Assembly: GCA_023515725.1 (NCBI GenBank)
Contig: JALDTO010000234.1
Location: forward strand, 1-7,324
Direction: 5' to 3'
Origin: Amoeboaphelidium protococcarum X5
Taxonomy: Eukaryota; Fungi; Aphelidiomycota
DNA length: 7,324 nt
Part shown: piece after piece, positions 4,827 to 7,324 of the stretch
Numbering within the stretch: position 1 is the stretch's first letter
How the letters are laid out: every line of letters starts with the position of its first letter
Program-made: the position numbers and the translations under genes
The notes under the pieces: generated by a model
Seen by the model: the letters and a program-made list of their open reading frames with translations, nothing else
Database searches by the model: none
What the model was told of the DNA's origin: nothing

Positions 4827-6200
4827 ATGATGAAAGTATACGTAGCTGCTGCACTTGCGCTTATACCTCTACTGTCTATATGTGGTCGCTCTCTTTCGCT
4901 GGATGGCCGCTAAACTTATGCTATAAGTCGCTGTCACCCTGAAGATCCAGAACTTATATCTACGGGCCAACTCGATATTGTATTTGAGAAATGTCCAGAT
5001 GGCTATGTGTGCAGGAGTCATAAAACCCTTTAAAAGCACCTTGATATGCCTGCGACATCATTTGCTCATTGCGTAGATAAGAAGCTACTGAATCTCGATT
5101 AATTCTGCTCTGATAAGCTTGCTGCTGCGGCTGCTACATAAAATATTCAATTGCCCGAAGAGATCTCCAGCTCTCCAGTGAATTACACTCTTTTGGCTGT
5201 AACAACATGCAGTCCATTTGATTCTAACAGCAAATAATAAGTTTAATGCTCTTTGGTTTTGACTGATCTCACGTAAACTAAAGTTTAATTCCAGATTAAT
5301 CCATGTCCGCAATTTGATGTTTGCCGCAAGTACTAGCAAGTTACCTATTCTGGTGATACTGTAAGTTTAACATCTCAATAACAAATTATCTCACAAAGCC
5401 TTGTGTAGAAAAGCTACTGTGAATAGCCAGTACATGCTTTATGCAAGGATCGATTTTTTAACGTTTACGCTCAGTCTATCAAATAGAATCTGCTAACAAC
5501 CTCTGACGTGCAGCAAGGAGAAATTGAATTCAAGTTTTGCGATCCTTACAAGTAGAATAAATACCTGGGATGCTCAATGAAATACACTGTTCACATGCAG
5601 AGAGATGACGATCTGTATCATGGATAGCCTCGCGAAATCAAATTTTAATTCAATCATATCACTGTGTCTCATCATTTCTGTTCGTAAAAGTTGATAAGAT
5701 AAAGTGGTCTTACATAATTGGACACATAGTAGAGCTATTTAGATACAACTTTCATCAATTCTGGGCCTTAATGTCGCCAGTTTACTCCCTCTGTAATGCG
5801 CTGTACTTCAAGACCGAGCGTTCGTTCCAATCCATAGGCCGTGTAAAAGCTTCGATCATCCACAACAGCTGATATATTCAATCAATTGTTTCAACTCGGG
5901 GAATTTGTACATTTCTGCGCTGATAAAGATGAGCCTGGTCAGTATTGTCTTCCCGGAAGTCCAGAGATTGGTATCATTTGTCCTCAAGGTAGAGCTGTTT
6001 CTTGTCCTCGCCCTTTTATCACTGATCCCAACAACTGGAATGATTTAGGCTAGGCGCCTCGATGTGTACAAAGTTATGGCCCTTTCCCAGGATTTATATA
6101 AGGTGATCCTTTCAGATTGCCGCTTAATGCTCCGTATGATATGTTCACTGGTGTCAAGTTGAAACAAGGCCATTATGCGCAGTGTAAAGTGATGAAATGA
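4827..6200 (+). CDS. Uncharacterised secreted cysteine-rich protein (457 aa unspliced, 441 aa if 5361-5408 is spliced out)
   Basis: The frame from ATG 4827 has no TGA until 6198-6200 and has about 25 exonic in-frame TAA/TAG. N-terminus MMKVYVAAALALIPLLSICG/RSL looks like a signal peptide. 22 Cys follow it, plus an NYT sequon; no obvious TM segment. An upstream in-frame ATG at 4728 is an alternative, less likely start. No family recognised. Confidence 0.82.
5361..5408 (+). other. Candidate 48-nt phase-0 spliceosomal intron (frame-preserving)
   Basis: Begins GTAAGT, has a branch-like TCTCAC and AT-rich interior, and ends TGTGTAG, the same 3' end as intron 6483-6544. Length is 3n and there is no TGA, so splicing is not forced by the frame. 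Confidence 0.6.
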
Positions 6201-6258
6201 TTGCAAAGGATTATGTGAGGAGAATCTGTTTTATTACGCTCAGATTATAAAACTTTTT

Positions 6259-6844
6259 TCACAATTTCTTTTTCAGTTTAGGCAACTTGCTGCTAGATGC
6301 ACCATCTTTCTGATCCAAAAGTAGCTGAGAATCGAGATTGAACTGGTTGCGGCCATTAGTCTCATCCAAAATTGCCTTCTTGCGGTCGCGCACTTCTTTA
6401 GCACGGTCCTAGTCTGCTTTTGCCTTCAATTGAACTCTTGACAGCTCAGCTAATCTATTCTACTCGGCCTATTCTTCCTTCTCTACACATTCATACTATT
6501 AAAATATTTTATGACTTTAAGCTAAATTGCGCGCTAATTAATACCTTTTAATTCAGCAGCCAGGCGTGCGTTATCTTTAGTATCTTCAGGTGTCTTATCC
6601 TCTGCATCTCTGATAAATGCTGGCTTGTTAGATGGTACCTTTAACTCGTCCGCAGATACTTCAAACACGACAGCTACAAGGATCTGGGTATGATGAAATA
6701 TCAAAATTTAGTTCAACTCTATTTCATACAATTTCACTTACATTTTAGAGGCTTTTTGGCATCTTGGGCCTTACCATTTTGCTATGGCTTCTAATCCTAC
6801 GACTCGGCCAAGTTGCTCTGCTCACTGGATGGTCCACAGCCCAT
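6259..6844 (-). CDS. Stathmin-like (STMND1-like) protein with N-terminal myristoylation/palmitoylation motif, 151 aa; exons 6844-6742, 6673-6545, 6482-6259
   Basis: Spliced translation with TAG=Q: MGCGPSSEQSNLAESQDQKPQQNGKAQDAKKPLKSVVFEVSADELKVPSNKPAFIRDAEDKTPEDTKDNARLAAELKEKEEQAEQNRLAELSRVQLKAKADQDRAKEVRDRKKAILDETNGRNQFNLDSQLLLDQKDGASSSKLPKLKKKL, ending TGA. Exons of 103+129+224 nt sum to 456 nt, and both GT-AG introns are phase 1. The gene structure is well supported; the stathmin assignment comes from by-eye motif alignment. Confidence 0.8.
6483..6544 (-). other. Intron 2 (62 nt) of the stathmin-like gene
   Basis: Minus strand AAG/GTATTA...TGTGTAG, AT-rich. Removal joins AELK/EKEEQAEQNR into one charged helix. 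Confidence 0.8.
6674..6741 (-). other. Intron 1 (68 nt) of the stathmin-like gene
   Basis: Minus strand GTAAGT...CCTTGTAG, AT-rich. Removal gives the continuous frame KPLK/SVVFEV. Confidence 0.8.
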
Positions 6845-7324
6845 ATTTTCGCGTTATTGCTTAGAAGAATGACTCTGTAAAAGTGTTAGTGATGAAAAGT
6901 TGGATGAATATGTGTCAATTTGAAAATGAAGATTATGTCGCACCACTGACTATATGAAAATATTTGAAGTTAAAAATAGCCATCTCTTTGAGCTGTTTCA
7001 ACTGAAATATGATTGTAACGATTGTGAGGATGTACGATCATTAAACGATTACTTTGGTACATGGAGTTTCCTTAAACTTCAAAGTATTACCTAGTATATA
7101 CTTTCTACGTCGCATTAATGGATAATACTCCATGTATGGGTAGACAGTTAATAACAACGCGGTCAATTGATCTCGCAGCCTCGGGAAATCTGTAAGCAGT
7201 GCAAGTAGCGTTGTATCACTCAGTTGATACTACGTTGGTCTCTTGGCAGTCTGCGATTCGCCAAATTTCTATATTGATTTCGTGTAACGTTGATTTAATT
7301 GACTGTACACTCCTGAGTTGCAAC

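Follow-up and report, generated by a model that had tools for sequence, protein, structure and literature searches.

A recoded three-exon gene of Amoeboaphelidium protococcarum encoding a putatively dually acylated helix protein with an STMND1-like layout

The minus-strand gene and its neighbours in the window

The window, by which we mean the whole stretch of 7,324 nucleotides analysed here, comes from Amoeboaphelidium protococcarum, a member of the Aphelidiomycota on the fungal side of Opisthokonta, as a preliminary description made from the letters of this DNA had supposed when it assigned them to a non-animal genome on that side of the opisthokonts. The organism parasitises algae; at the rear of its amoeboid zoospores sits a pseudocilium that contains 2-3 microtubules and does not move. 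On the minus strand the window holds a gene of three exons and 151 codons that opens with an ATG at 6844 and closes with a TGA at 6261-6259. Exon 1 (6742..6844) encodes M1-K34 and contributes the first base of codon 35; intron 1 (6674..6741; 68 nt, GT..AG) is followed by exon 2 (6545..6673), which supplies the rest of S35, V36-K77 and the first base of codon 78, and intron 2 (6483..6544; 62 nt, GT..AG) is followed by exon 3 (6259..6482), which completes E78 and runs through K79-L151 to the stop codon. Six in-frame TAG codons are read as Gln, three of them in exon 1 (6799-6797, 6793-6791 and 6784-6782) and three in exon 3 (6471-6469, 6462-6460 and 6411-6409). The product begins MGCGPSS (6824..6844), continues through the stretch VVFEV (6671-6657), which lies in exon 2 together with a Pro-containing acidic linker, and ends in the polybasic tail KLPKLKKKL (6262..6288), which is identical in all four natural copies. 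A single long alpha-helix predicted by AlphaFold2 spans residues 63-138 (6301..6590, the DNA being split by intron 2) and includes the stretch L76-K113 (6551..6376).

Several lines of evidence indicate that this model is correct. Transcript contigs from three runs (X5, X6 and X7) omit precisely 6483-6544 and 6674-6741 and differ from the exons at 0-1 positions. Contigs from X5 and X7 extend to 6867 and the transcript begins there or further upstream, giving a 5′ UTR of at least 6845..6867, while the 3′ UTR (6216..6258) ends at a poly(A) site near 6216 that is marked by a poly-T loose end before this position in an X5 contig. That these contigs derive from RNA is evident from their splicing and from the poly(A)/poly(T) and adapter sequence at their ends; the three runs belong to one study and were counted as one independent source. 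The same gene is present in GenBank as KAI3632642.1, a 151-residue "hypothetical protein" annotated on a contig of 7324 bp, equal in length to the window. The window exons were handled singly, with per-exon counts summed, and their translations correspond to residues 1-34, 36-77 and 79-151 of KAI3632642.1, which leaves residues 35 and 78 to the two junction codons; since these matches are exact, the spliced model is identical to the existing annotation, in which S-VVFEV occupies residues 35-40. The preliminary description had proposed exactly this three-exon structure with TAG as Gln, and its landmarks (the MGCGPS start, SVVFEV, the Pro linker, the helix and the KLPKLKKKL tail) all fall where it placed them, with both introns now confirmed by the spliced contigs. 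It erred in holding that recoding and introns hide the gene from standard annotation, where it already stands as a hypothetical protein.

Comparison with a second gene copy, on contig C155 of genome G000, adds evidence for coding function and for the genetic code. The two copies are 92-94% identical in the exons and 76% identical in intron 2, and their 29 coding differences comprise 23 synonymous and 6 non-synonymous changes (pN/pS 0.07); exon 3, which encodes most of the helix and the tail, contributes 13 synonymous changes and no non-synonymous change. The minus-strand gene is under purifying selection. Among the codon exchanges between the copies are two of TAG/CAG, one of CAA/TAA and one of TAG/TAA, which is direct evidence that UAR encodes Gln, in agreement with the reassignment already published for Amoeboaphelidium protococcarum and with the recoding that the preliminary description had read from the window.

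A sceptical view would be that 6844..6259 is a chance open reading frame or a non-coding transcript, for which one might cite its short length, its six in-frame TAG codons and its lack of homologues. The chance of this is negligible: the transcripts are spliced and polyadenylated, the substitutions between copies fall as they do in coding sequence and include the TAG/CAG and CAA/TAA exchanges, the use of UAR as Gln is documented for this organism, and the helix is predicted with confidence. The transcripts together with the pattern of synonymous and non-synonymous change rule out a non-coding frame, and 6844..6259 is a genuine, expressed and selectively constrained gene of Amoeboaphelidium protococcarum.

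A neighbouring gene on the plus strand converges on the minus-strand gene. Its poly(A) site lies at about 6242 and that of the minus-strand gene at about 6216, and the two overlap at the mRNA level by about 27 nt (window 6216-6242). Transcript contigs of the neighbour over window 4847-5690 confirm a 48-nt GT..AG intron at 5361-5408. Over about 800 nt these transcripts show 29-30 mismatches to the window, compared with 0-1 for the minus-strand gene; several of the variants recur in run X1, in its second DNA haplotype, and the RNA seems to come from another allele or a strain mix. Further upstream on the plus strand, an open reading frame at 2751-3353 matches the Pfam family DUF726 (E 2e-20, residues 111-200 to model positions 2-91) and forms the first part of a larger gene of DUF726/TMCO4 type that is interrupted by introns and TAG.

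Architecture of the protein and the search for relatives

Full-length protein analyses were run on the three database proteins, P0001, P0002 (KAI3632642.1) and P0003, of the 90% cluster, whose three GenBank entries are KAI3654324.1, KAI3651440.1 (assembly MP228) and KAI3632642.1. AlphaFold2, run without an alignment, models residues 1-62 and the tail as disordered and residues 63-138 as a helix, in which pLDDT exceeds 90 over about residues 71-130. Only 18% of the residues in the helix are L, I, V, M or F, and the best heptad register places core residues at no more than 29% of the a/d positions; a canonical coiled-coil dimer is ruled out by this absence of a heptad core. There is no internal repeat in the helix either, its best self-alignment scoring 23 where shuffled sequences average 25.6 (p = 0.71). 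Three prolines (P48, P52 and P63) lie between VVFEV and the helix, which starts 25 residues downstream of that motif, and residues 139-151 carry a net charge of +5. Searches with the AlphaFold2 model against Atlas shapes and the PDB (Foldseek) returned generic long-helix matches or nothing.

The N-terminus fits the consensus MGCxxS/T, in which Gly2 is N-myristoylated and Cys3 S-palmitoylated, and a six-frame profile search of genome G000 found genes for both an N-myristoyltransferase (NMT) and a DHHC palmitoyltransferase. The protein thus has the N-terminal motif of the dually acylated, SH4-type functional class in an organism that encodes the modifying enzymes, the acylation itself being predicted. 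At the DNA level the degenerate pattern ATG-GGN-TGY-GGN-CCN-WSN occurs in genome G000 only in the two copies of this gene.

Homologues outside Amoeboaphelidium protococcarum were not detected, the exhaustive part of the search covering the last 56 residues. That part was a phmmer search in which the C-terminal 56 residues of the second copy were run against 1.84 billion representatives; it recovered only the gene's own cluster, represented by a single public protein, P0001. Word-seeded searches of 5.8 billion proteins with full-length P0001 and with residues 35-138 of P0002 again found only this cluster, a scan of JGI metagenome contigs with P0002 found nothing, and helix look-alikes within genome G000 were limited to the two copies of the gene. 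Neither KAI3632642.1 nor its copies match any Pfam family at threshold, and the stop-free exon pieces (42, 49 and 56 residues) gave no match in Pfam or the PDB.

The preliminary description had aligned the helix with the second tubulin-binding repeat of stathmin, and had named a profile match above generic coiled-coil background among the observations on which this reading should stand or fall. No such match was obtained. At E <= 10 none of the three full-length proteins (P0001, P0002 and P0003) matches the Pfam Stathmin family (PF00836). With four slices of P0002 as queries (residues 30-140, 35-140, 41-120 and 36-125) hmmscan reports it at 13.4-14.1 bits (E 0.046-0.081), short of the gathering score of 24.7 by some 10 bits; on these slices it ranks first or second among only 3-4 weak Pfam matches and aligns residues 41-113 with model positions 62-135 of 136, in about the register proposed in the preliminary description. 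Because the hypothesis arose from this same similarity, the search-wide E-value applies and not a per-family P-value, and since many slices were tried the slice E-values are weakened further. In P0001 and P0003 the corresponding slice gives no such match, D57N being the sole difference from P0002 that the two share in that region, and the alignment starts beyond VVFEV and lays the disordered, Pro-containing residues 41-62 onto helical positions of the model.

Against a control of 10 segments, which included four myosin-II tail slices and one K/E/R-rich segment from the same genome, PF00836 was listed for none, one control being represented by the best 25 of 65 families; the K/E/R-rich query of the charged-helix background set returned 2 matches only. 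On the P0002 slices themselves, however, unrelated families score much as Stathmin does (Calreticulin 12.5, LPP20 14.2 and Vma12 11-12 bits), and true coiled coils of genome G000 match unrelated helical families at up to 22.7 bits, so that the PF00836 match does not rise above the helical background. A phmmer search of all PDB chain sequences with P0001 and the exon pieces likewise returned no stathmin or RB3 chain at E <= 10. A six-frame search of genome G000 with PF00836 gave no candidate, whereas the positive controls in that search (NMT, DHHC, Snf7 and the myosin tail) were found across in-frame TAG/TAA.

A different picture comes from the ESM-Atlas feature search. The nearest neighbours of P0001 are mostly animal clusters whose members partly carry PF15398 (DUF4619) or PF00836, with a top score of 0.91 and 196-199 of 256 features shared among the leading matches. 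Stathmin-labelled clusters account for 24 of the 30 matches and include forms of 148-152 residues. The top neighbour is a 152-residue arthropod cluster labelled DUF4619 (score 0.91, 199 shared features). The recognition value of P0001 is 1910, and below the mark of 2300 even a high score is rated as weak evidence; the 49-residue exon piece gave no usable match. Pfam matches are carried by only 11-19% of the members of these Stathmin and DUF4619 clusters, and the failure of Pfam to recognise KAI3632642.1 is therefore weak evidence against membership. Some invertebrate clusters carry PF00836 and PF15398 together, a hint that FAME and STMND1-type proteins may be related.

Likeness to STMND1 and the competing readings

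The helix of the stathmin-like domain, about 95 residues long, hydrophilic and not a coiled coil, carries two tubulin-binding repeats in tandem and is preceded by a capping strand or hairpin at the N-terminus and then a linker rich in Pro; STMN2-4 are anchored to membranes by palmitoylation alone. Measured against STMN1-4/RB3, KAI3632642.1 shares an F-E-V motif about 25 residues before its helix, VVFEV being a candidate counterpart of the capping strand, and the weak PF00836 alignment places residues 41-113 on the second half of the model at 13-14 bits. It differs in showing no detectable similarity to solved chains and in lacking the tandem repeat within a predicted helix of 76 residues. AlphaFold2 predicts no strand at VVFEV in the monomer. 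The anchor of KAI3632642.1, predicted to be myristoyl plus palmitoyl, also sets it apart from STMN2-4.

The closer comparison is with STMND1, which Deng et al. (2024, PMC11238091) describe as a stathmin clade of ancient origin with a lipid anchor and a link to cilia. All STMND1 orthologues share the N-terminal consensus MGCGPSQ, called "highly conserved", which was shown to be myristoylated and palmitoylated, and the stathmin-like domain binds tubulin with a KD of 0.4-0.6 uM (PMC11238091). The same study lists stathmins from fungi, ciliates and choanoflagellates, and the view taken in the preliminary description, that stathmins are in general known from animals and close holozoan relatives, is accordingly outdated. 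The shared N-terminus to which that description drew attention is real, MGCGPSS agreeing with MGCGPSQ at 6 of 7 positions with Gly2 and Cys3 kept, although the motif is not exclusive to the family. Beyond it both proteins are small and without any other domain, both have a long hydrophilic helix after a disordered spacer and a basic cluster rich in K and L, and the nearest neighbours of P0001 in protein-language-model space are of this kind. They differ in length (151 versus about 280 residues), in the spacer (35 versus about 117 residues) and in the absence of a PF00836 match at threshold from KAI3632642.1. The predicted nuclear localisation signal of STMND1 (consensus PLRKPPARLKKLKIKKEV) lies inside its stathmin-like domain, while in KAI3632642.1 the sole cluster of like composition, KLPKLKKKL, is found at the extreme C-terminus, past the helix.

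How far the N-terminal motif speaks to kinship is limited by a third protein. The PPEF phosphatase PEF-1 of C. elegans also begins MGCGPSS, the first seven residues being identical to those of KAI3632642.1, and there the motif directs myristoylation, palmitoylation and localisation to the ciliary membrane (PMC11569196). The remainder of PEF-1 is a phosphatase unrelated to KAI3632642.1, and the heptapeptide is therefore a recurrent targeting signal and not a family marker.

On this evidence we regard KAI3632642.1 as a lineage-restricted, dually acylated and membrane-tethered helix protein that is STMND1-like, perhaps by convergence, a reading to which we assign a probability of about 0.5. The consensus MGCxxS/T and the NMT and DHHC genes suggest that Gly2 would be myristoylated co-translationally and Cys3 then palmitoylated, and the protein would most likely reside at the cytoplasmic face of a membrane. 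In the structural model the first 62 residues would form a disordered spacer and residues 63-138 a single, very hydrophilic helix that has no coiled-coil core and is probably stabilised on a partner and not by self-association; the +5 tail could bind acidic lipids or act as a nuclear import signal. Because the layout is that described for STMND1, soluble tubulin is the leading candidate for such a partner. The stathmin interpretation of the preliminary description holds with respect to the N-terminus, the succession of anchor, spacer, FEV, Pro linker and helix, and the Atlas neighbours, and fails with respect to profile and PDB matches. Kinship with the stathmin family cannot be demonstrated from the sequence above background, and we consider true homology less likely than not.

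The heptapeptide, the Atlas neighbours and the weak PF00836 match nevertheless point to one family, which makes very diverged homology a serious alternative. Under it KAI3632642.1 would be a true STMND1-type stathmin with a membrane anchor and approximately one tubulin-binding repeat, its helix binding soluble alpha/beta-tubulin and VVFEV acting as a cap, possibly at the zoospore pseudocilium. The uniqueness of the MGCGPSS motif to this gene in genome G000, Atlas neighbours dominated by PF00836/PF15398 animal clusters that include 148-152-residue forms, the recurrence of PF00836 on four P0002 slices and its absence from the families listed for the control segments, a helix that is hydrophilic and not a coiled coil, the known occurrence of the family in fungi, ciliates and choanoflagellates, and a pseudocilium with microtubules in the organism are all consistent with such descent. 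We nonetheless hold it to be the less probable account, in that PF00836 is missing from every full-length copy and from the P0001 and P0003 slices, aligns disordered residues with a helix, and scores within what coiled-coil controls reach by chance with unrelated families; the PDB and six-frame searches were empty although the genome's other targets were recovered; the helix is 76 residues long with no internal repeat; no basic nuclear localisation signal lies between strand and helix, the basic cluster being C-terminal; the heptapeptide also opens PEF-1; and the Atlas recognition value falls below its mark. The specific proposal that follows from this alternative, a single-repeat, myristoyl/palmitoyl-anchored STMND1-type stathmin in an aphelid that senses or buffers soluble tubulin at the zoospore or pseudocilium membrane, is likewise tentative.

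The Atlas result admits another explanation. FAME/CCDC198 (DUF4619, PF15398) is N-myristoylated and moves from the membrane to the nucleus when myristoylation is blocked (PMC10226981), and it resembles KAI3632642.1 as a membrane-associated, N-myristoylated (here by prediction) and otherwise featureless protein whose family labels the top Atlas neighbour, the 152-residue arthropod cluster. It is improbable, though, that KAI3632642.1 is a relative of FAME and not a tubulin binder: PF15398 (threshold 31.7 bits) matches neither the proteins nor genome G000, the clusters that carry PF00836 alongside PF15398 suggest that the label may describe invertebrate STMND1-like proteins, and the authors who described FAME found it to lack homologues across the genomes that they surveyed (PMC10226981). 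Given a recognition value below the mark and a DUF4619 label that denotes another N-myristoylated protein, the neighbours may reflect a class of proteins with an acylated N-terminus, disorder and a charged helix and not common descent.

The main present result is a well-validated gene model together with a direct demonstration, through allelic codon exchanges, that UAR encodes Gln. Were the stathmin link proven, the gene would encode a minimal stathmin of 151 residues, anchored to the membrane, from the lineage that is sister to Fungi and from an organism whose flagellum is reduced to a pseudocilium. It would connect the cilium-linked role of ancestral STMND1 with this lineage, and as a minimal natural stathmin-like domain it would be useful both for understanding that ancestral function and for establishing which part of the domain suffices for tubulin binding. 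Even so the gain would be moderate, because fungal, ciliate and choanoflagellate stathmins and the ancient, cilium-linked, lipid-anchored clade are already on record (PMC11238091). The case also carries a caution, in that an N-terminal acylation heptapeptide and a charged helix are insufficient for assignment to a family.

Paired copies of the locus in the genome

The minus-strand gene is one of several that occur in pairs in this assembly. Between the window copy (6259-6844) and its counterpart on C155 (L002, L003) the divergence amounts to 6-8% in the exons and 24% in intron 2. The NMT, DHHC, Snf7 and myosin-tail genes are likewise present as near-identical pairs on separate contigs. This suggests an assembly in which two diverged haplotypes or subgenomes are represented, and the 7.3-kb contig of the window is possibly a haplotig of the C155 region.

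Within intron 1 the second copy contains an insertion of about 2.76 kb (C155 about 274409-277167; L002:1969-3468 and L003:241-1500) that is not in the window copy. The open reading frames of this insertion have no Pfam match. One of them, of 147 residues, occurs at 21 places in genome G000 with 99% identity, and the insertion for this reason looks like a recently active mobile element.
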